DNA of 64,000 bases from Zancudomyces culisetae HAW-14-8 (Eukaryota > Fungi > Kickxellomycota), in the NCBI GenBank assembly GCA_052426225.1, contig JBNJNM010000007.1, positions 496,001 to 560,000 of the forward strand, read 5' to 3'. Shown here piece by piece: positions 23,552-63,945 of this stretch. Both the position numbers and the translations under genes were made by a program. A model generated the notes under the pieces. That model did no database searches. It saw nothing but the letters and a program-made list of their open reading frames with translations, and was not told the DNA's origin. Numbering within the stretch: the first letter of the stretch is position 1; every line of letters begins with the position of its first letter.

Positions 23552-23605
23552 ATAAAATGAGTGAAAGCAAAAAAAGAAAGTGGTGGAAGGGCCTATGTAT
23601 ATTCT

Positions 23606-26393
<2,788 letters not shown>

Positions 26394-28859
26394 TTTTCCT
26401 GTTTTGTAGACAGATTTAAACACTTGTTTTTAATAGTAGTTGTAGTTTTAGTTGTAGTTGTGTCTATCTGTATGTGTATATGTGTGTATATAGACGTTAT
26501 CCAGGTCAAGTATCGAAAATGTAACACGCAACTGTGATTAAAAGTTCAAGCTGGAAAGTAAAAACGAAAAGCAACAAACGAACTGGGCATTGGTTTATTA
26601 TCGGTGTTTTCGCTTTCGGTTTTTGCGCTTTCTTGAGTTTTTGAAGTACCAGGATTCGCAATTTGCAATTCGTCAATTCGCCAATTCGCCAGCTCATTAA
26701 TTGGCCAATTATCAATGCATACTTAACATAATCACAGTTCATTGCACAAATCGAATATGTGATTTGTTCATTCAAAGATTCAATGTTTATGATTCAACCC
26801 AACTTCAGGCTGCAAATAATATTCTTCCATCCTCCATCTTTCATCTTTCATCTTTCATCTTCCATCCTCCATCTTCCATCTTCCATCCTCCACCTTCCAT
26901 CTTTCATCTTCCATCTTTCACAATATACCTACATAGACATAGACATAGACATAGACATACCCAAACCAACCACAACACCAACCACAATACCAATAGTTGG
27001 GTATAAGCGCACTCTTTGTGAGGTTATTAATATTTTACTCACCAGAATCTTGCAATAGCTTTTCAAAAAAAAATTCTAAACTAGCTATGTGTAAATATAG
27101 ATACTATTTTCTATATAATTGTAATTGTAAAACATCTTGTATACTATTACTTTAAACCATTTCTTTTATTTATTTGGTATAGTTGGTCAGATTTCGTTAT
27201 TATTTTTCATCATCTTTCAAATAACACATTTCAGGTTTTATCCTGCTAGTTATTTTTATCCTCAGTTAAAAATAAAATTTTGGCTAAAATTCATCATATG
27301 ATATTTTTTATTTTACACCAACAAGTATTAAAGACTTATAACTCGAGAAATAATATATAATCCGATAGGCATGACACTCTGTCTTCCAGTATTTGAAGCA
27401 GGTAGTTGTGAAGTTAACAAGCACATTCTCCCTTCATGTTAGAATTTGTCTCGTCAGAATTTTGCTTAGGTACATTTCCTATGGGAATACTGACCACCGT
27501 ATTGTTATAAAGTGGCTAGCTTACAACTGTTAAGTTAGGTAAGAGTTGCACCATCATCATTATTTGGATCTGCATTTCTAGCTTGAGTTAATACTTTGTT
27601 GGCCTATTAATATATACTTGCCTTAATTTGTATTGGCTTAAGTTTTCTTTTATTCTTTTTTTTGCCATGTACACTTTGTAGTATGGTGGTACTTTTTTGA
27701 AGATAAAAATTTAAGCATTGTTTTTGAATATGCCGACATAATCGATGATGCATTCTATGCATGTTGAATCCGTATATCTAGGACATTTAAGTTTCCTACC
27801 CTCTTCCATTTCTAAAACTAGAATATTTTCCTATTCCCATATTCAAAGAATTCATGTATCCATGCACAATGGCCTAGAATGCTTGTACCCTCTTTGTATA
27901 CTCAAGCTTTTTACGGCTTCTTTAGAAACGAATGAGTAGAAAATGCAGTTTTTATTTTAAAAAATAAAGGAAACTAGTGCCGCTTTCTAATATTTCCGCA
28001 TTTTATGACCATGAGTCAAAGCACAGTTTAGGTTGTGGTAGTTGATTGATATTGCATGTATTCCTCTATATGTTGATATCAACAACGTGTTCTTTATAAT
28101 TTATATAACCGCTTTTTTTTCTGAACCAATAGATTCTGATTTTTTGATGGATTATGATAATCTGATTTTGCAGTAAATTACCGCACTGCACTGCGTTGTT
28201 GTAAAAAATTTCTTTTCGTTGGTATATATCCCTATTTGTCTAATTTACAGGCCATCTGAGGTATAAATACATTAATTAAACTGCTGAATTAGCTTGCACC
28301 AGTAACCAAACAATGAATATTGTAAATTATACAATTTCTCGTCCTTTAAAAGTAGATGGAGGCTCTCAAGGCTTTGAGAGAGTGATGAGAGGGGAATAGA
28401 ATAACCATTAAGGGTAGAAAATCCTCGTCAATATAATACAAACTGATCAAGTTATCTACTGAAAAGGCATTCTTTCCCTTTCCCTTTTCCTTTTTCCTTC
28501 TCATCCCTTGTTTTTCAGCATTTTGCACTTTCTGTTTCTACTACCTCACAAGCCACCATCGACAGGGTCTATTTAAACAGTATATGTGATTGTCCTGATA
28601 TCTCCTTTTTAATCGAGCACTTTTTGAACAATTAAATGATAATTATCTCGTGAAGTTATAGGGTACACATTTTTATTTTTATACAAAGAATAGTTTACAG
28701 ATGCTAAAAATAAAATATAATAATGCGAAAATCAGTAAATTTAGTAGATTGTTTGAAAATGCATTTAAAAAATATCTCTGGTGGGTCTCCATAACAATTT
28801 TGATTGTTTACAAAGTCTATTCTAACTATCAGCTTGGTCCCAAATCAAAAAAAATTATG

Positions 28860-46375: not shown

Positions 46376-47128
46376 TATTCAGGGAAAAGTGCACAATATT
46401 TTAGTCAAATACATTACAAGATCCTGGTGAGTAAAATATTAATAACCCCACAAAGAGTGCGCTTATACCCAACTATTGGTATTGTGGTTGATGTTGTGGT
46501 TGGTTTGGGTATGTCTATGTCTATGTCTATGTAGGTATATTGTGAAAGATGGAAGATGAAAGATGGAAGGTGGAGGATGGAAGATGGAGGATGGAGGATG
46601 GAAGATGGAGGATGGAGGATGGAAGATGAAAGATGAAAGATGAAAGATGAAAGATGAAAGATGGAGGATGGAAGAATATTATTTGCAGCCTGAAGTTGGG
46701 TTGAATCATAAACATTGAATCTTTGAATGAACAAATCACATATTCGATTTGTGCAATGAACTGTGATTATGTTAAGTATGCATTGATAATTGGCCAACTA
46801 ATGAGCTGGCGAATTGGCGAATTGACGAATTGACGAATTGACGAATTGACGAATTGCAAATTGCGAATCCTGGTACTTCAAAAACTCAAGAAAGCGCAAA
46901 AACCGAAAGCGAAAACACCGATAATAAACCAATGCCCAGTTCGTTTGTTGCTTTTCGTTTTTACTTTCCAGCTTGAACTTTTAATCACAGTTGCGTGTTA
47001 CATTTTCGATACTTGACCTGGATAACGTCTATATACACACATATACACATACAGATAGACACAACTACAACTAAAACTACAACTACTATTAAAAACAAGT
47101 GTTTAAATCTGTCTACAAAACAGGAAAA

Positions 47129-49916
<2,788 letters not shown>

Positions 49917-50712
49917 AGAATATACATAGGCCCTTTCATTATAATTGTCGTTTTTTTATCTCGTTTTTAAATTTTTTTTCTGATTTGGTATATTGTTATT
50001 CATCCGTGGCATTTATTCTTTTTTCTTTGCGCAATACTGCGTTGAAAATAAATGTCTCTAATTAGGGTGTATTTATTGTCGATTCTGCTAGTCTTGTAGT
50101 GATATTTTCAGATTCCTGTATTCACGGAGTTTTATTGTTTATTGAATCCCAAGATAATTAGGCGAACTAGTAACTAAAAGTCACTATTTTCAGTATTGAT
50201 GAGCATATTAGGCTGGCCATTCAATTCCCATGTTCATCATGTCCCCGTCAAGTTTTTATACCATTAGTTGTTTAGGTTTAAAGATCTTGGATTATGTCAA
50301 CCTGTTATGTGGTTTTAATAACTATTAGAACCATCTAGCTAACTATGGATAATAAAATTAATTTTTTTAATTGCCGATGCAACTAGTTAGTGTAAACCAG
50401 TTACTGAGACTTTCCTTATTTATTTTTTATCCATTTCACATTGGAGGTAATGGGATCATATATGGAAATGTGAGAATGTCAAACACTATTTAATAATTGA
50501 AGAAACTTGTTGTACTCGTTTTTATATTAACTTTCTTGAACTCTGGTTTTATTTTTCCCTGTTTCTTTTTCCTTTTCTTAGTATTATTATGTTTTACAAT
50601 TTCTTTAAAAGGGTCTATTAATCCAAACACGTCAAGGACATATAGTTCTGTTTTGGTGTTGCTAATAAACAAGAAAACAAAAAACTGGCTGTAACACCCA
50701 ACTTTAAGAAAA

Positions 50713-51156
50713 ATGGTTGCACTGAGAAAACTGATTACAATAATATGGTTCATGTGGGTTACATTAGGCAGTGAACAGAACAAGATTGAAAAACTTTTAA
50801 AAAATAATTTTAATGAAAAACTCGTACAAGCAACAGATGAGGCTGTAGTAAAATTCATGATACCGTGGTGTGGATATTGTAAGAGTACTATGATACCATG
50901 GTGTGGATACTGCAAGAGTATGAAGGCACCATTTGAACATGCAACTAGTGCAGTTAGTTCAATGGGGAGGAATGTCATGTTTGGGGAAGTAGATTGTGCT
51001 GCTGAAAGAGAACTTTGTGATACAAATGGGATAACAGCATTTCCAACCATGGTTATTTATCGTGTGGGTGGTGGAAATGATAAAACAAAACTAGTGGGAT
51101 ATCGCAATGGCGATACATTTCTGACAGAGGTTAAACGCGAACTTGGATTCGAATAG
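50713..51156 (+). CDS. Single-domain PDI-type thioredoxin-fold protein with signal peptide and tandemly duplicated WCGYC site, 147 aa
   Basis: Signal-like MVALRKLITIIWFMWVTLG; VVKFMIPWCGYCKSTMIPWCGYCKSMKAPFE; FGEVDCAAERELC; cis-Pro loop GITAFPTMVIY. No HDEL/KDEL. Confidence 0.85.
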   Translation: MVALRKLITIIWFMWVTLGSEQNKIEKLLKNNFNEKLVQATDEAVVKFMIPWCGYCKSTMIPWCGYCKSMKAPFEHATSAVSSMGRNVMFGEVDCAAERELCDTNGITAFPTMVIYRVGGGNDKTKLVGYRNGDTFLTEVKRELGFE

Positions 51157-51499: not shown

Positions 51500-54400
51500 C
51501 TATGAAAGGAGTTTATAGAGCAGCTTAGATTTTACATTGCCATCATCTCTATTATAGGTACCCTTGGCATTGGAACAGCGGTCATCATGTTCAGGAAAAT
51601 CCATAGCAAGCAAGTCAAGAAATGAGCAGTTGAGAAATGTAGGGTTTTTAGATTTGGGGTCCTGAGCAAGGTTTGGCAATAGGAACGATGGGGTAGGGAT
51701 ATGGGTATGAATATGGGTATGCTGAGCTTGTCCAAGTTGCGTTTGGTTGTAGGGGGAGGAGTCGATGTTAGATGAAAAAATGTGTAAAAGCGACCAAAAA
51801 TAATTGGTAAATGAGAGAATGGAAAAATTACTAGTGCATCTATTTCCATTATTACTACCACCAATATCACTTGTTGTTGTTGCCGCTGCTGTTGGGTTTG
51901 GATTTGGAAGATATATAGGAAACAAAGATATCAAGAATAGAGATACAGAAAGACGGGAGGGTTTTTGCGGGCAAGGTTGCGATAAACTTGATGGTAAATC
52001 GTTGGTTGAATTGAAGATGGGGGTGTGTGAAGTCATTGAAAGCAAATGTTTTGCAAAGTTAAGGTGTTTGGAAATGTGAAAAGTATTGACTTGAATAAAC
52101 CGCGTATCAATGTTATTTGGATCTGTTGTCGACGGCTGGGTAAGTTGATCATCATCATCATCATCCTCATCCTCGTCATCGTTATCACCATCAATGTGAT
52201 CAATGTTGTAGTCGTTGGCTTCAGTATTTGAGTGTTGGTTTTGGTGTCTATTTTTGCTTGTTTTTGGATATAATACAGAAGGGTAAAATGCGTCAACATG
52301 GTTAATAATATCAAGTAGATAAAATCCACTATCAATATTGTTGTTGTTGCTAGTAGTAATATTGGTGGAATCGTCGGATTGGAGTACACCAATATTTACC
52401 AAGCCCACACAGACGCAGAGAAGAGATAAATGAGTTAACAGCTCATGTTTTACAGAGTTAAGTATACTATCTATAGTGATATTATCTGATTCGGGGGTTC
52501 TTGAGGGTTTGAATAAGTTTATAAAATAAACGATACATTCGAGTAACAAATTGGTACAAGCGGGATTGCGGGAACCCAGATTATACAGAGAAATGGAAAG
52601 TAAACAGGAGGAGAGACAAGTGGTGTATGTGGATAAGAGATTGTCAGCATCACTGAACCCCAAGAGATCAATAACAGAGAGAGAAAACACATCGTTTGCA
52701 GAATTAATGTTGAGAATGTTGGTGAGAGGGATGGGGATTAGAGTTAAAAGGGCTGATTTATTGGAAATACCAGCTAACGAGTCAAAATTAATCAAGTTTG
52801 AAGCCAGAATTCTGAGAAATAGCGATTCAGTAGTAAGCGCCAGAATGGTTTGAATGGAGGTAAACGGAGAGGAAATCTGGGAGGAAATTGAGGCATCATT
52901 AGAATCCAAATAAACCAAAGAAAGCGCTACAAGTGCTGCAGGTTCTCTAACTAGCGAGCTGAGTGCCATTTTTGCAGGAGTAGTGGTAGTGGTAGTGGAA
53001 GAAGAAGATGATGAGGTAAGCCTGTAAGTAAAATCAAATAAGGATTGGTTATTTAGTAACGAGAGTAAAGTGGTTGATAGCGAAGGAACGAGGTTGTGTA
53101 GAGTTGAAGATGTAAAAACCGAGGCTTGTGATTGTGACGGTTGTTTTTTCTGCTGTTGGGTATCGAGTAAATTAAAAATTAGACCTAAAGCAAATCCACA
53201 AGAGAGATTATACTGGGACTGGGCGACAATTTGATCCATAGTATTTTCGCTATAGTCATATTTGCTGCTCAGCACACCAAATGAGTCAAGTTCACGGACC
53301 AAATACTCTACAAACCTGTGGCTTTTGTGTAAAGGAAACGTAATCGCCAAGCCCAGGACTGCGCTGCTCTGGACCACTAGACTTGGACTCATCAAAGATG
53401 TAGTTTCTGCATCATTCGTGCTGTTTAAAATGCTGTCAGTATCATTAATGGTGTCTAAAAAGTTGTATATATTGGAAGGTTCGTTCGTATCATTAAACGA
53501 GGAACTCGGAATGCCATTGACCAGAGTATTTGAAAGTCTGGGCAAATGTAGTTTTAGCAAGTTGATTATGTTTTGGGTATTTGAAACCCCATGCTGGATA
53601 GATTTCGACAATAAAATGGCAGATTTGACGATATCATTGTTGCTATCATTTAGGTCCTCAATCAATTGCCACAATTCTATAGTTTCTACTGGATTGTGAG
53701 CGTTCAAGGATAAAGCCACGCTGTATAATAAAGCAGCATATGTTATTATTGCATTTTTGTTTGCTTCAACAGCATCCTTGTACAGTTGATCGGATATGGG
53801 AACCGATTTTATGAGCTGGTTCGTATCTGGCCGATTTACAAGTATCCATGATGCATCAAGGTTGGTATTTCTACCACTTATAGAGTGGTTGCCTTTTGAT
53901 GGTGAAAAGATGCTCATAGTATACGACATTGCATTCATGAATACTGCTTCATTGATTATTGGTTGGGTTATCTCGGATCGTTTAGCGATTGCAGTAATAG
54001 CTTGGACTTTGGTCTTTATCTGCACAGATAGATCCAAACTTGGTATTTCCAAGGGTTTATGAGGGTTTAGTACGTTTTTTAACGTGTTATGGTAGTTTGT
54101 GTATATCCAAATTGGTAGTGATAGATTTCGAATGGCTGTATTCACTACTCGGCGTTTTGAAGTTGCGGTGTACTGGAATGAGCCAATATCCAACTCGGCA
54201 TGTTTTTCTGTGATATTAGCATCGTTATTATCATTACTATTACCATTAATGTTAATATTGTTATTGTTATTGTTATTGTTATTGTTATTGTTATTGTTAT
54301 CAGTTAATCTAAGGTTACAGAATAATATTTTTTTATTCTTGCTTATAAAGGAGTTATATTCTTGAATAGTTCCAAAAATAGCCAGTTTCAAACCATCATT

Positions 54401-56902
54401 AAAATATTTGGCCTGTTCGTTTGCAATAATACGATTTAAAGCAATCAAGTTAACATCGAGTTGTTCTGATAATGTATTGTCAATACCAAGATTTCCAACC
54501 CGACAGAGTTTTTTCATATGGATATATGTTTTTACCACTGAAATTGCCAGTTTTGTAGCACATAAAATGTCATCTTGGTCATAAATTGGTACAATTCCAG
54601 TAAAACTACATTCCACACACCTGTTTTCATTTAAGCTTTTTTCACCGCATTTACACCGATTACAGGGTGGTATATGCGACGTTGAATTAGTGTCAATGCT
54701 TATATATAAGGAAAGGAAATGTTTTTGAACATCTGTAAGCGTTGGGAAATCTGGTACTTTTAGATAATCTAGGCTAGCACTAGATGGGTTTGAAAGTATC
54801 AGTTGGTACAGAATCCAGTTTCTAAAACATAGCGGTTCTAGCATCCTTGATAAGGTGGTGCCATCCCCACCAGCATTGTGTTCATTAATTTTGTCCAAAT
54901 CCAGCTGGTTTTCAGATTGCAAACCGGAGATTATTGATTTGTAGTATTGTGTGTAGTTGTTTTCTCCGAGTAATCTGGAATATTGGTATAAAAATTCGGT
55001 AAAATGATATAAACTTTTGGTCCAATTGTTGAATAAAACAAGCTCATCTTGAAAGACCAAGTTCAAAGTTACAAGAAGAGCTCTTTGTAGTGATTGTTCT
55101 TGTTGTCTTTGGTTATCACTATCACTATCACTATCACTGTTATTATTGTGTACATTAGAGAATTGATTTTTTAGTAAATTGGTTAATATTTCCCACTCCA
55201 TATAATCTAGTTTTTCCATTTCATTGTATAATATATCGCCCAATTGACCAGGCACAGATCCAGACCCAGACCCAGACCCAGATTCGAGTGAATAAGTCGA
55301 GTTGCGGACCTCTGTATAAAATTCATATACAAAACTATAATACAAGGATTTATGTAGAACAAACGAGAGGCTCTTTAGTGTTTTTACCACTAGCAAATTG
55401 TGCACATACAAGTTGATTTCGATTCGATGAGTTTTATCAAATAGGTAGTACCCATTACCAAGATATTCGATTCTAGTTTCTTGGTTTGAATTGTTGTTAA
55501 AAGCGTTATTTATACCAAAAGATGGCTCCAAAGAACAAAAGGGAGTAATAATTGTGTTGGAGAGACTATTTTGATTATGTTTAGGTACTGGCAGATACTG
55601 GTCTTTACCAAATACAAGTAGTACCTTGTTTGTTTCCGTAACAAGTAGATATACATTGGGTACCAAAAGTCGTTGGTGGGTGTTGTTTTTGGCACCTTTA
55701 TTATAAAATTCACAAATATCTACAACATTGCGTATTTCGTATTCATAGTTATAATTACAGGAATGAAGAATATCAATACGTTGATTGTTGGCACCAATAT
55801 CGTAAACTCGCAAAACCTTCTTTTCACGATCTAGCACAACCAGAGCATTTTCATTTGATGTGCAATGTCCACCACCGACACTTATTACTTTTATACGATC
55901 GGTAAGAGCAAGTGGTAGTGTGGAAGAAGAATCGAGACGCAATTCACAGTGTTTGGTTGAGATATACGTTTTTTTATTCATAGTGTCTTTTGAGCTCGAA
56001 CTTTGGATATTGTATACGTGAATATAGTTTTGATAGCTGTGTAAAGAGACTTGTATGGATATCAATATAACCAATTTACCCGACATCCAAGACTTTTGAG
56101 TAGAAATAGGCTGATCGAGGTTTGGGATAAAATGCAGGATTTTGTACTTTGGAATATTCTTCTTTTTGTGTAACTTTAAAGAGTCTTGATTATTGTTTGG
56201 ATTAGTTGTATCGTGAATACTGGATGTAGAGTCACAGGTTATTGGTATATTAACAATATGTTGTTCCAAGCCGTAAATATCTTCGAGTAAACAAAACGTA
56301 AGGTTAGACACAACAGGCTGGTGATTCTGTGCAAGTTGTAGAGACTTTGGGGTTTGTGGAATTTGATACATAAAGCCACAGTCTAGAGCCACAAGCCTGG
56401 TATCTAGGGTATCAATGGTGTGAGCATAACCGGGAGTTATACACAATGTGGTTAAATCTAGGCTATTGTAGTTCCGATTTTCTAGGTACAAATCTAGAGT
56501 GTTGTCATCATACAGTACACATAACCCAACCAGCGTTCGATCTTCGTCAAGCCCTTCGGTTTTATTTACAAAATATTGGGGTGGCTGTTGTGAACTAGTG
56601 TTTGTAGCTGATTCTTTCTCACTAGTTTTTTGAAATTGGTAATTTTCCTCGCTAAGGTTTTTCGATGTATTGAATTTACAAAATAGAAATTGTTTGACAA
56701 CACCATATTCATTGACCCTCACATCTGGATAGCCATAAATACGGGGGGATAAAGTCTGTTGAAAATTTTTGGTGGAAATAGATTGAAACAAACGACCATT
56801 TTTGGTCCAAATCAAGGTATGGTTAGGTTGATAAAAGGCAACGTTTTCGACGTTTTTATGTACAAGTGTTGTGGTTGGATATTTTCTCGTTCGTGTTGGC
56901 AT
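51500..56902 (-). CDS. APC1: Anaphase-promoting complex subunit 1 (highly diverged), 1800 aa, intronless
   Basis: Colinear Apc1 PC-region blocks: LDASWILVNRP, LLKLHLP, VQSSAVLGLA..HRFVEYLVRELD, YNLSCGFALGLI, PAALVALSLVYLDSND, LFLRILASNLINFDSL, SCLLSISLYNLGSRN. Confidence 0.75.
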   Translation of the reverse strand: MPTRTRKYPTTTLVHKNVENVAFYQPNHTLIWTKNGRLFQSISTKNFQQTLSPRIYGYPDVRVNEYGVVKQFLFCKFNTSKNLSEENYQFQKTSEKESATNTSSQQPPQYFVNKTEGLDEDRTLVGLCVLYDDNTLDLYLENRNYNSLDLTTLCITPGYAHTIDTLDTRLVALDCGFMYQIPQTPKSLQLAQNHQPVVSNLTFCLLEDIYGLEQHIVNIPITCDSTSSIHDTTNPNNNQDSLKLHKKKNIPKYKILHFIPNLDQPISTQKSWMSGKLVILISIQVSLHSYQNYIHVYNIQSSSSKDTMNKKTYISTKHCELRLDSSSTLPLALTDRIKVISVGGGHCTSNENALVVLDREKKVLRVYDIGANNQRIDILHSCNYNYEYEIRNVVDICEFYNKGAKNNTHQRLLVPNVYLLVTETNKVLLVFGKDQYLPVPKHNQNSLSNTIITPFCSLEPSFGINNAFNNNSNQETRIEYLGNGYYLFDKTHRIEINLYVHNLLVVKTLKSLSFVLHKSLYYSFVYEFYTEVRNSTYSLESGSGSGSGSVPGQLGDILYNEMEKLDYMEWEILTNLLKNQFSNVHNNNSDSDSDSDNQRQQEQSLQRALLVTLNLVFQDELVLFNNWTKSLYHFTEFLYQYSRLLGENNYTQYYKSIISGLQSENQLDLDKINEHNAGGDGTTLSRMLEPLCFRNWILYQLILSNPSSASLDYLKVPDFPTLTDVQKHFLSLYISIDTNSTSHIPPCNRCKCGEKSLNENRCVECSFTGIVPIYDQDDILCATKLAISVVKTYIHMKKLCRVGNLGIDNTLSEQLDVNLIALNRIIANEQAKYFNDGLKLAIFGTIQEYNSFISKNKKILFCNLRLTDNNNNNNNNNNNNNNININGNSNDNNDANITEKHAELDIGSFQYTATSKRRVVNTAIRNLSLPIWIYTNYHNTLKNVLNPHKPLEIPSLDLSVQIKTKVQAITAIAKRSEITQPIINEAVFMNAMSYTMSIFSPSKGNHSISGRNTNLDASWILVNRPDTNQLIKSVPISDQLYKDAVEANKNAIITYAALLYSVALSLNAHNPVETIELWQLIEDLNDSNNDIVKSAILLSKSIQHGVSNTQNIINLLKLHLPRLSNTLVNGIPSSSFNDTNEPSNIYNFLDTINDTDSILNSTNDAETTSLMSPSLVVQSSAVLGLAITFPLHKSHRFVEYLVRELDSFGVLSSKYDYSENTMDQIVAQSQYNLSCGFALGLIFNLLDTQQQKKQPSQSQASVFTSSTLHNLVPSLSTTLLSLLNNQSLFDFTYRLTSSSSSSTTTTTTPAKMALSSLVREPAALVALSLVYLDSNDASISSQISSPFTSIQTILALTTESLFLRILASNLINFDSLAGISNKSALLTLIPIPLTNILNINSANDVFSLSVIDLLGFSDADNLLSTYTTCLSSCLLSISLYNLGSRNPACTNLLLECIVYFINLFKPSRTPESDNITIDSILNSVKHELLTHLSLLCVCVGLVNIGVLQSDDSTNITTSNNNNIDSGFYLLDIINHVDAFYPSVLYPKTSKNRHQNQHSNTEANDYNIDHIDGDNDDEDEDDDDDDQLTQPSTTDPNNIDTRFIQVNTFHISKHLNFAKHLLSMTSHTPIFNSTNDLPSSLSQPCPQKPSRLSVSLFLISLFPIYLPNPNPTAAATTTSDIGGSNNGNRCTSNFSILSFTNYFWSLLHIFSSNIDSSPYNQTQLGQAQHTHIHTHIPTPSFLLPNLAQDPKSKNPTFLNCSFLDLLAMDFPEHDDRCSNAKGTYNRDDGNVKSKLLYKLLS
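54257..54300 (-). repeat. (AAC/AAT)n microsatellite encoding a poly-Asn tract in APC1
   Basis: Plus strand reads (TTGTTA)n; translation shows about 15 consecutive Asn. Confidence 0.9.
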
Positions 56903-59617: not shown

Positions 59618-61672
59618 TTAAATTCTATTATTGATTAGTTTAGTAAATAAAAGAAAGTCATCATTGGAAGAAGAATATAAGGATTCAGCTAGAGAATAAG
59701 TTCGGATGATTCCATTAGTGTCTCCTGTGGCGATTAGTCGACCGGCATTACCAAACGCCAATTTATTAAGTCCAGCCAATGGTAATGATGACGACTTGTT
59801 GTTAATGGATGTAGATTCAATTGGGACTTCAGGATTGGTAGATAAATCAAATAGAGACAAAGATCCAGCAGCATCAACAGCAGCAAACACACAAGGATGA
59901 GAAGGAGACCATTTGGCATCCATCACATAATCCGAAAAAGTATCAATCGCATGGATACTGCGGACATTAAGGCGTCGGTTCTGGGCATCGGAAGTAACCA
60001 AAGCCGAACTTGGCCGCAAACCAGCTCGGTGTTTGAATAGGCGGACCGACCAATCAAACGACGCCGTCAACACAATATCGGAAAAGTTGGGGTGGACATG
60101 CAGAGCCGAAATGCGGCTGGTGTGGCCAACATAGCGATCCGAACCCAACCCAGCTCTTGCTCCTGCTTTGTCAACACGACTGCCACTATAAACATTTCCA
60201 TCGTGTCCACCTGCCCAAAATGTATCGCTACTTGCAAAATCTATTCCCGATACATCTGTAAGCGCCAGTTGCTCAATCGGTGCAGCCAACATATCCATCT
60301 GCCACACACTCATTGCTCCGTCTGTACTCGTCGTTACCATCATCCGGTTCTGCCGGCTCCCCACCAGCCGAACTGCAAAAATCGGCTGCGAATGGCCTGA
60401 ATTGCTGCGTCCCACCGGTGAACTCCCTGCTCGAATATCCCATATTACCACCTGGCCCGAATACGTTGCTCCGACTATTGTTGTTGGTGAATATTCGTCC
60501 ATTGCCACACTCAAAACATCCGAATTGCTATAAAACCGGTATTCCGGCCGTTCTTTTAAATGAAGATTCCACACTTCAACCATTCCATCCTGCTCACTCG
60601 GTGCCATCACATCTCGGTTATAACTAACTGCTAACAACTCGCTATGTTTACTACTAAACGCCAAATCTGTCACGCTACGCCCGCCTTCGCCCCCCTTCTT
60701 GTTACTGCCAAATTCCCGCTGCAACTCCATCAGACTTTCCTTTGCCTCGTCTCCTACCTCCGCCGCTCCATAATCTATCGTAATATCATAATCCTCATCC
60801 AATGCCCGCTCAATAATCTTGCTACCTCGCTCTACTGCCCGGTACACATCCTCACTCAGTACTTCCAGCACTTGTTGCTCCTTCAGTATTTCAACCTGCT
60901 TATCTTTTTCTCGTTGGCTAGCCTCCCTCTTGGCTTCCGCCAACTCTTGTTCTGTACGCCGTCGCTCTTGTTGAACTGCCTCTTTTACCTTTTCCTCTAC
61001 ATTCTCCGAACTTACCAACCCCTTCAGTTTTTGCACTCTTGCCAATATTTCTTCCTCATCCTCTTCTGTCACCACTTGGATCTCTTTGTGATATGTTACT
61101 TTTTCCTTGGGCGCTAAATCATATACCACTGCTGAAAATGTACTCAGCTCTACCACCGGCACTTTTCTTTCTTCAGCTCCCTTTGTCCCCATCCTCTCTA
61201 TATCCATACTATTTCCTCCTCCTCCTCCTCCTCTGCTACTGGCACTATCGCTCTTCCCTATACTACTTCCAACACTGCTACTCTTATCCAGCTCCATCCC
61301 GCCCTCATTACTCTCGTATGTTTTGTTTTGCATTTTTCCTTGCTGTCCACCTATGCTTTCCCCCGACATTACTCCAGGTTCTTGATTGCCTACCCGTTCA
61401 CTCTCAGTTTTGTTAACCATCGTATTGGTACTAACTCGCACTCCCGTATCTCCGCTCTCCCGCTCGCCCACCAGAGAATTCACCAACTCTTCAATATTCC
61501 TACTTTTCACTTCACCTACTCCCCCAGCCCCAGCTCCAGCTCCTACTCCTCCTGCTCCTGCTCCTCCTGCTTGCCTGGTATTCAAAAGTTGTTGCCTTCT
61601 TTCTTCTCTAGCCCGCCGCAATTCTGCCAATTTGGCTCGTTTTTTTTCTAATTCCCCTCTTCTACTCTCCAT
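59618..61672 (-). CDS. PAC11: Cytoplasmic dynein intermediate chain (WD40), 684 aa, intronless
   Basis: RRGELEKKRAKLAELRRAREER N-terminus, VTYHKEIQ light-chain site, KIIERALDEDYDI, WD40 repeats GATYSGQVVIWD, LTASFDWSVRL, YVMDAKWSPSHPCVFA. Confidence 0.9.
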   Translation of the reverse strand: MESRRGELEKKRAKLAELRRAREERRQQLLNTRQAGGAGAGGVGAGAGAGGVGEVKSRNIEELVNSLVGERESGDTGVRVSTNTMVNKTESERVGNQEPGVMSGESIGGQQGKMQNKTYESNEGGMELDKSSSVGSSIGKSDSASSRGGGGGGNSMDIERMGTKGAEERKVPVVELSTFSAVVYDLAPKEKVTYHKEIQVVTEEDEEEILARVQKLKGLVSSENVEEKVKEAVQQERRRTEQELAEAKREASQREKDKQVEILKEQQVLEVLSEDVYRAVERGSKIIERALDEDYDITIDYGAAEVGDEAKESLMELQREFGSNKKGGEGGRSVTDLAFSSKHSELLAVSYNRDVMAPSEQDGMVEVWNLHLKERPEYRFYSNSDVLSVAMDEYSPTTIVGATYSGQVVIWDIRAGSSPVGRSNSGHSQPIFAVRLVGSRQNRMMVTTSTDGAMSVWQMDMLAAPIEQLALTDVSGIDFASSDTFWAGGHDGNVYSGSRVDKAGARAGLGSDRYVGHTSRISALHVHPNFSDIVLTASFDWSVRLFKHRAGLRPSSALVTSDAQNRRLNVRSIHAIDTFSDYVMDAKWSPSHPCVFAAVDAAGSLSLFDLSTNPEVPIESTSINNKSSSLPLAGLNKLAFGNAGRLIATGDTNGIIRTYSLAESLYSSSNDDFLLFTKLINNRI

Positions 61673-62352: not shown

Positions 62353-63945
62353 CTATTTTCCTTTTGCCCTCATACTCTTCTGCTTTTGTGCCTGTTTATA
62401 TCTTCTTTCCTCCTCTAACTCTCGCTGTTCCTCAATCATATCCTCCAATTTTGCAATCTTCAAACTACGATGTTCCTCTTGGTTCAGATAATCTATGCTC
62501 GCCTCCATATCTGAACTATCACCATCATCATCATACCCCGCTATTCGCCGCCTCTTTGCCCCGCCATCATTATATCGTCTAGCATCATACCCCGTGATTT
62601 TATACAATTCTTTTCTATAATCAAGATTTCCACCCCCACCCCCACTCCCTCTTCCTCCTCTACTATAACCACTTGCATCACTTTCGTCCTCATCGGATAC
62701 TATAAACCCATCCATTGAATCATACTCATCCTCTTCTTCATATCTTGATCTTCGCTTCGGTTCATATGCTGGTCTCTTTGTGCTTCTTGCATTTGCAGAC
62801 ATGCTTATAGATTTATTCGCCTTATATGACCTGCTCAAGCTACTTGATTCGTATCTCTCCCTACTGCTGCCTCTGCTTTCGGCTCTACTATCAATACCAA
62901 CACCCTTACTACTACTTTTCCAACCATACTCACTTTTTGCTGTTCTATCGGGTGTTAGTGATCGTTTTGACCTTTCTTTTGGCCGCTCTTTTAGTTTTTG
63001 TTTAACTCCAAACCGGTCCAATTCCTGTACCACTTTTCTCTCCTTCTTTTCCTCGGAAATACTCAATGACTTGACTTTTGACGGATCCAACTTTTTTTCT
63101 GTTCTTTTAACTCCACCGTTATCCACCACTCTATTCGCCCTACTATTATCTCTCGAAAGCCCATTCCCTTCCCTGCCATCTCTACCATTATTTCCAGCGG
63201 AACTCCTTGATAAACTAGCATTCGCTCTACTCATTTGTAGCTCCTTATCCCTTTTCATTTTGCTCTTTGCACTCTCCATCATTCGAATCGGTATCCCACT
63301 TTTTCCTACAGTTTTAGCCCCCGCCACTCCTCCTCTAGCTTCCTCTCCAACTCGGCTCTTGATTCCCGAACCTAGACCCAATCTAGATCCAAGTCCTCCA
63401 CTACCACCCATTCTACTCATTCCACTACCAACACCCTCCTTACTCTTATCCTTATAAAGTGCTTGTCCCTTTGACGCTGCATTTTTCATCAACTCTTTAT
63501 ATGTCAAGTGTCGCTTCTTGCTATCGGACACATCTTTATCTTTGGTCGTTTCCACCATCCTTTTTGCTTCTCGTTGTATACCTGCTCTATTTTCTACACT
63601 CCCTTTCCTCTGTGTTTCATTGCTAGCACCATCACTTTTACTGCCATACTTGCTCCTTTCAAGGCTTTTTCCTATTGAAGCTTGGCTAGGTTTGCTATAC
63701 CCTCTCGACTCTAGTCCTTCTCGCTCCCTTTTCTCCCGTTGTTGTTGCTGTTGCTGCTGCTGTTGCTGTTGTGTCCTTTTTTGCAGTATTTCTTGTTTCT
63801 CCCTTTCTATCCTTCTATCCCGTTCCAATTGCGCCACGCTGTACAATCTCTCTCCTTTACGTACTCCACCACCAGCACCTCCTCCTCCCCCACCTGTTTC
63901 TCCCTTTACCATGCTCAACAACTTGTTGAAATCTAAATTTTGCAT
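62353..63945 (-). CDS. SPT2: SPT2-family chromatin protein / histone chaperone, 530 aa, intronless
   Basis: LTYKELMKNA; C-terminal SPT2 domain YDSMDGFIVSDE..ELYKITGYD..DSSDMEASIDYLNQEEHRSLKIAKLEDMIEE; poly-Q and G/S/R-rich middle. Confidence 0.82.
   Translation of the reverse strand: MQNLDFNKLLSMVKGETGGGGGGAGGGVRKGERLYSVAQLERDRRIEREKQEILQKRTQQQQQQQQQQQREKREREGLESRGYSKPSQASIGKSLERSKYGSKSDGASNETQRKGSVENRAGIQREAKRMVETTKDKDVSDSKKRHLTYKELMKNAASKGQALYKDKSKEGVGSGMSRMGGSGGLGSRLGLGSGIKSRVGEEARGGVAGAKTVGKSGIPIRMMESAKSKMKRDKELQMSRANASLSRSSAGNNGRDGREGNGLSRDNSRANRVVDNGGVKRTEKKLDPSKVKSLSISEEKKERKVVQELDRFGVKQKLKERPKERSKRSLTPDRTAKSEYGWKSSSKGVGIDSRAESRGSSRERYESSSLSRSYKANKSISMSANARSTKRPAYEPKRRSRYEEEDEYDSMDGFIVSDEDESDASGYSRGGRGSGGGGGNLDYRKELYKITGYDARRYNDGGAKRRRIAGYDDDGDSSDMEASIDYLNQEEHRSLKIAKLEDMIEEQRELEEERRYKQAQKQKSMRAKGK

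Follow-up and report, generated by a model that had tools for sequence, protein, structure and literature searches.

No part of the thioredoxin fold is better conserved or more closely studied than the junction between strand and helix on which the CxxC motif resides. Among described systems, the a-type catalytic domains of ERp46/TXNDC5 and P5/PDIA6 come closest to the protein reported here, which shares with them the fold, as judged from sequence and prediction, the FxxPWCGxCK active-site segment, the cis-Pro loop and the VDC...LC cysteine pair, and with the PDI family a hydrophobic N-terminus as a putative targeting segment. While ERp46 possesses three such domains and P5 two plus a b domain, the present protein has one catalytic domain per chain, is devoid of KDEL/HDEL, shows Tyr where the CxxC motif usually has His and carries the active-site segment twice. 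It is encoded by Zancudomyces culisetae, a Harpellales fungus that inhabits the gut of larval mosquitoes and blackflies, on a stretch of 64,000 nucleotides of strain HAW-14-8 (contig JBNJNM010000007.1, positions 496,001 to 560,000, forward strand), the whole of which is called the window throughout.

The features of the gene and of its two paralogues are collected in Table 1. A stop codon is located six codons 5' of the ATG, the open frame amounting to 153 aa, and the gene model in assembly GCA_001969505.1 likewise comprises 147 aa. The product matches PF00085 with 78.8 bits (E 3.5e-22; gathering cut-off 23.5) over one domain, which bears out the thioredoxin-fold identity assigned in an earlier reading of the DNA letters (the sequence-only reading) and specifies it as a single domain of the PDI type. 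Sequence matches in the PDB are the catalytic domains of TXNDC5/ERp46, PDI, PDIA3, PDIA4, PDIA6 and ERdj5, with TXNDC5 on top (8.7e-32, summed over its three domains). The columns of P62, W63, C64, C67, C95, C102, P111 and T112 are invariant or nearly invariant when the window protein is aligned with 109 homologous domains. The cysteine pair VDC...(L/V)C, which follows strand beta3, is typical of ERp46/P5-type catalytic domains and, by analogy with known ERp46/P5 structures, C95 and C102 would form a structural disulfide. On every sequence and fold criterion that could be tested, the window protein belongs to the thioredoxin fold and resembles the catalytic domains of the ERp46/P5 type.

Table 1. 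Positions and basis of assignment of the gene, its sequence features and its two in-genome paralogues (window positions, unless another locus is named).
Feature	Position	Strand	Basis or description
PDI-family thioredoxin-fold gene, single domain, 147 aa	50713..51156 (stop codon included)	+	Intronless ORF, PF00085, PDB sequence matches
Hydrophobic N-terminal segment MVALRKLITIIWFMWVTLGS, probable signal peptide	50713..50772	+	Read from sequence
Repeat copy 1, MIPWCGYCKST, residues 49-59, C53/C56	50857..50889	+	Tandem Repeats Finder, codon comparison, AlphaFold
Repeat copy 2, MIPWCGYCKSM, residues 60-70, C64/C67	50890..50922	+	Aligned homologues, AlphaFold
C95...C102 pair (VDCAAERELC)	50995..51018	+	At least 90% kept in 110-row alignment; also in both paralogues
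P111-T112, cis-proline loop (AFPTM) facing active site	51043..51048	+	P111 invariant, T112 nearly so in 110-row alignment
Paralogue P0151	L002:1483-1899, contig C11	-	Single-domain PDI-like, signal-like N-terminus
Paralogue P0152	L003:1462-1893, contig C8	+	Single-domain PDI-like, signal-like N-terminus

The N-terminus is probably a signal peptide, with a small-residue site TLG/SE where the equivalent N-termini of the paralogues end in LG/LA, and the AlphaFold model described below places a helix at residues 3-17 (pLDDT 62-75). The C-terminus reads RELGFE. The proposal of a secreted or ER-type protein without HDEL, made in the sequence-only reading, agrees with these termini as read from the sequence, and our best guess is that the product would act as a thiol-disulfide oxidoreductase of the secretory pathway.

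In this gene a 33-bp in-frame tandem duplication has doubled MIPWCGYCKS at the junction of the central beta strand and helix alpha2. Tandem Repeats Finder reports for 50857-50922 a period of 33 with 1.9 copies, 90% matches and 0 indels; a 33-nt repeat of such length and identity is far beyond chance in a 64-kb window, where it is also the sole repeat with a period >28 that is located inside a conserved domain. Both units are in frame and give rise to C53-G-Y-C56, seven residues and C64-G-Y-C67, with the WCGYC motifs 11 residues apart, so that two WCGYC reside in one domain, where a PF00085 domain has a single active-site motif. The units differ at 5 of 33 bases, three in codons 1-10 (CCG/CCA, TAT/TAC and TGT/TGC, all synonymous third-position transitions) and two in codon 11, which is ACT (Thr) in copy 1 and ATG (Met) in copy 2. 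The two units had been quoted exactly and in frame by the sequence-only reading, and codon comparison verifies its further statements of three synonymous-only differences in ten codons and of a CxxC-x7-CxxC spacing. An intron that removes one copy was considered by enumeration of all GT-AG pairs around the repeat and rejected, as no in-frame pair keeps both strand and helix. As no GT-AG intron yields an intact single-motif protein, both copies would be translated if the gene is expressed as annotated.

From the single sequence, AlphaFold delivered an uninformative model (pLDDT 43.6), while the model built with a 110-row alignment, in which homologues are aligned onto copy 2 with the register consequently biased towards copy 2, reached a pLDDT of 85.6 and a pTM of 0.77. 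In this model, residues 43-49 (EAVVKFM) form a strand, 50-64 a loop and 65-83 a helix, and the remainder completes a normal thioredoxin fold with a central sheet and flanking helices; Foldseek retrieves with probability 1.00 PDI a, ERp46 Trx2 and Trx3, P5 a0 and a, and ERdj5 Trx4. Helix alpha2 starts directly after C64; in the alignments, homologues show a gap at copy 1, and copy 2 is the aligned PWCxxC. We infer from the model that copy 2 takes up the canonical catalytic site, where the helix begins, opposite the cis-Pro111 loop, and that copy 1 forms an 11-residue surface loop beside it, predicted with moderate confidence (mean pLDDT 66 for residues 51-60). The earlier suggestion that the strand leads into copy 1 and the helix follows copy 2 matches this alignment-based model, with its register biased to copy 2.

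The HAW-14-8 assembly consists of 26 contigs (27.2 Mb) obtained by PacBio HiFi sequencing, RNA-seq exists for this strain, and the older Z. culisetae draft is an Illumina assembly of strain COL-18-3 (PMC12611240). Comparison of the window with the COL-18-3 draft (GCA_001969505.1) over 1.48 kb of the locus displayed approximately 20 substitutions and 3 indels, that is about 1.5% divergence, distributed as 1.9% upstream, 1.35% in the coding sequence (6/444 positions) and 1.2% downstream. The nearest database protein is the COL-18-3 protein P0001, of the same length and with 145/147 residues identical. The 66-nt repeat is base-for-base identical in COL-18-3, its three internal synonymous differences included. 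The duplication is a true genomic feature common to two diverged Z. culisetae strains.

With respect to the neighbourhood, the thioredoxin gene begins 775 nt past the right arm of a perfect inverted repeat of 3127 nt (23584-26710 and 46812-49938), the arms of which are 20.1 kb apart. Contig LSSK01000975 of the Illumina draft ends at approximately window position 50022, 84 nt outside the arm, as expected if short reads could not cross the repeat. Downstream, with 343 nt between the stop codons, a convergent Apc1-like gene (1800 aa; 51500-56902, minus strand) harbours extended stretches of Asn, Ser/Thr and Asp as well as hexamers repeated in frame. In-frame tandem repeats with periods of 6-15 occur in neighbouring coding regions at 54256-54300, 55255-55283, 61534-61571 and 63738-63772, and the genome seems prone to slippage within genes.

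The closest relatives of the window protein are two paralogues in the same genome, P0151 (138 aa, WCGGC) and P0152 (143 aa, WCGFC), which are also annotated in the COL-18-3 draft. They share with it a signal-like N-terminus, one domain, a length of about 140 aa, the lack of a retention signal (their C-termini read ...ERKKV and ...SARK, without HDEL/KDEL) and membership in one clade, but are only 26-33% identical to it and have a single motif each, a state of the relatives that the sequence-only reading had named, together with a lack of transcription, as a ground for refutation. The usual CGHC motif is absent from all three members of the trio. A maximum likelihood tree computed for 45 domains pairs the window protein with P0151 (99/89), with P0152 as the next to join (98/51), and shows branch lengths of 1.53 for the window gene and 1.36 and 0.90 for the other two versus a median of 0.94. 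As both clade partners have a single motif, the doubling is placed on the terminal branch that leads to the window gene alone, within a trio of fast-evolving genes.

Outside Z. culisetae, no member of the trio was found in the searches made. Word-index searches with the protein and with an alignment of the three paralogues recovered only Z. culisetae proteins and distant thioredoxins, and an exhaustive search of representatives gave 3376 matches at E<=0.001, the best 150 of which are multi-domain PDIs, with no other protein of about 140 aa above approximately 80 bits. Synteny was approached via Rpn3 of Smittium simulii and S. culicis, fetched with 10-kb flanks. In S. culicis LSSM01000516.1 (10001-18660), Rpn3, an SPT2-domain gene and an ECT1-like cytidylyltransferase gene adjoin each other and all have counterparts within the window, and micro-synteny is partly conserved over a very deep divergence, the identity of Rpn3 between the genera being 44-53%. 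Neither Apc1 nor the thioredoxin gene was found at this locus, and tblastn detected no thioredoxin within the 10-kb flanks of S. culicis Rpn3, a negative result that says little as lineages with such Rpn3 identity are very distant. The nearest sequenced relatives are too distant for the duplication to be dated by them.

The arrangement is rare. Among the best 150 of the 3376 relatives (about 500 CxxC-bearing domains), P0001 alone has a doubled motif, with two CxxC within 20 residues. The strict doubled pattern, WCGxCK-(2-10 residues)-PWCGxCK, gave upon back-translation 0 matches in JGI metagenome contigs and 0 in IMG/VR. Loci retrieved with loose patterns were filtered for frame and subsequently scored against the thioredoxin profile: a looser doubled WCxxCK occurs at 120 or more metagenome loci, none in a thioredoxin fold among the matches listed, and at 20 loci in viral contigs, none in a thioredoxin fold, while the loose DNA pattern occurs at at least 120 loci in prokaryotic genomes, where the matches listed are GC-rich or simple-repeat chance matches and none is in a thioredoxin fold. 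These absences are suggestive only and weak for fungi, as the DNA collections scanned hold few eukaryotes. Literature searches yielded no description of an active site duplicated within one thioredoxin domain. The claim of novelty in the sequence-only reading has thus held over about 500 domains, the DNA pattern scans and the literature, and the feature is real and rare, a two-motif departure within a known fold. One metagenome locus (contig Ga0268261_10039227, 2307-2889) reads as repeated WCSHCK units and weakly matches the thioredoxin profile; it was rejected as a doubled thioredoxin, being a 33-nt satellite open in several frames, and it warns that matches to a doubled-CxxC pattern can be non-coding repeats.

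The reading that we prefer, held tentatively and at somewhat less than an even chance, is that of a PDI-like oxidoreductase in which C64/C67 are catalytic, C53/C56 reside on a flexible loop and the doubled form has long been retained. The gene would produce a single-domain PDI-like oxidoreductase of the secretory pathway, with the C64/C67 pair of copy 2 as the catalytic pair in standard geometry and the C53/C56 pair of copy 1 on a flexible loop of 11 residues immediately beside it. The doubled form would probably be expressed, and tolerated or useful rather than freshly broken. As the loop pair is predicted so close to the catalytic pair, dithiol exchange would be expected, and by analogy the loop dithiol of copy 1 may exchange with C64/C67, acting as a shuttle within the protein or as a disulfide of regulatory or resolving function; an internal disulfide relay had been put forward in the sequence-only reading, likewise as a conjecture. 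A stronger version, that selection has kept copy 1 as a mobile shuttle, a regulatory disulfide or a four-cysteine metal site exchanging with copy 2, we regard as unlikely; if true, it would amount to a natural two-step redox relay built into a single PDI domain of 13 kDa in a gut-dwelling fungus.

The age of the duplication and the constraint on the copies were approached by the Nei-Gojobori method, which counts 4.33 synonymous and 25.67 non-synonymous sites in the ten codons common to the copies and gives dN = 0 and dS = 1.92 between copy 1 and copy 2. Between the strains, the whole coding sequence shows dN = 0.0057 and dS = 0.0456 (omega about 0.125), based on E43G and T78A as the only replacements plus four synonymous changes. 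Silent-site divergence is at face value about forty times greater between the copies than between the strains, and with a dS of about 1.9 versus 0.046 the duplication seems to predate the split of the strains by far. Two steps are required at the junction codon, the shortest path being ATG -> ACG -> ACT, which fits an old event and a less constrained linker residue. Three random substitutions would all be synonymous with P = 0.003-0.013, depending on transition bias, in a test that rests on three to five substitutions picked after the fact; constraint on both copies at the protein level is suggested by this pattern, but the suggestion is thin. Of the hint at selection in the sequence-only reading, the synonymous-only pattern and its improbability under neutrality stand, while the step to selection competes with another account, in which two templates that had diverged beforehand would yield the same pattern without selection on the doubled state. 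Complete identity of ten residues in a surface loop may fit a young duplication from diverged templates at least as well as it fits long-term selection.

The alternative that survives best, and which we consider a serious possibility without expecting it to be correct, is that of a tolerated passenger insertion, by which replication slippage or unequal exchange has added 11 residues at a junction accessible from the surface, in a redundant paralogue that evolves fast. Copy 1 would have no role, the protein would work via copy 2 or be dispensable, and the synonymous-only pattern would be due to chance or to diverged templates, for instance alleles with silent differences only that recombined unequally. 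Short tandem repeats abound in the genome, some of them in frame within neighbouring genes, redundancy is provided by the two single-motif paralogues and several multi-domain PDIs, and the terminal branch of the gene is long (1.53 versus the median of 0.94). Identity of all ten loop residues is easier to understand if the copies are young, a surface loop gives no obvious reason to keep Met, Ile, Pro, Trp, Gly, Tyr, Lys and Ser, and just three substitutions make up the sample. On the other hand, such templates would need to be unusually far apart, with three differences in 30 nt, about 10%, compared with about 1.5% between the known strains. A donor paralogue for the second copy was considered and rejected, as the 121-nt stretch around the repeat is without a second copy in the window's own genome (27.09 Mb, 25 contigs). 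The outcome of three synonymous changes out of three is improbable under neutrality at the P values given above, and purifying selection acts on the remainder of the gene between the strains at the omega reported, with two non-synonymous and four synonymous changes. If copy 1 is inert, the feature would be a mere curiosity of a repeat-prone genome.

That the gene is instead silent or decaying, the duplication having broken the fold and the ORF being merely still unbroken, has a low probability in our estimation. No orthologue was found by the word-index and exhaustive representative searches, and the branch in the maximum likelihood tree is long, as would suit decay, but the ORF is intact in two strains with a surplus of synonymous (four) over non-synonymous (two) differences, all hallmark residues of the fold are retained, and a dS of about 1.9 corresponds to a long time without frameshift, stop or replacement in the motif.

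Only a slim chance is given to a metal site, an idea of the sequence-only reading, in which the four cysteines would bind Zn or an Fe-S cluster instead of forming two redox pairs. Four cysteines in CxxC-x7-CxxC spacing and the presence of a zinc-bound ERp44 structure among the Foldseek matches are consistent with such a site; [2Fe-2S] clusters can be ligated by glutaredoxins of the CGYC type and by engineered thioredoxins, and in E. coli thioredoxin 2 additional CxxC pairs bind Zn. However, the model predicts C64/C67 in standard redox geometry at the helix N-terminus, the Zn-binding thioredoxins known so far do so by means of a finger of its own at the N-terminus, in which two additional CxxC pairs reside, and an Fe-S cluster would not be expected in a protein of the secretory pathway. 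The weakest alternative, an assembly artefact by which two alleles or paralogues were joined, a caveat raised already in the sequence-only reading, is very unlikely and retains hardly any credence, since the same structure is present in the HiFi assembly of one strain and the Illumina assembly of the other and the repeat stretch is unique in the genome, without a close paralogue to mis-join.

A naturally occurring protein in which an insertion of 11 residues repeating the whole motif at the strand-helix junction has been tolerated, and perhaps put to use, represents a ready-made experiment on the tolerance of active-site geometry, and it bears on whether a nearby second dithiol alters redox potential or substrate handling. 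It also illustrates, on a small scale, what can be read from divergence confined to synonymous sites inside a micro-duplication, and where such a reading finds its limits. With respect to known systems beyond the PDI family, E. coli thioredoxin 2 (TrxC) is comparable in having more cysteine pairs than the catalytic one. The extra pairs of TrxC constitute a separate N-terminal zinc finger, whereas the window protein has one extra CxxC, which is an in-domain copy of the active site, and assignment as a zinc-finger thioredoxin of the Trx2 type was rejected as only one extra CxxC is present and resides inside the domain. The shuttle loops of Ero1, Erv2 and DsbB are alike in concept only, as a cysteine pair on a flexible loop exchanges there with a rigid CxxC, in the way that C53/C56 might exchange with C64/C67; these enzymes have unrelated folds, depend on flavin or quinone and are not homologous to the window protein.
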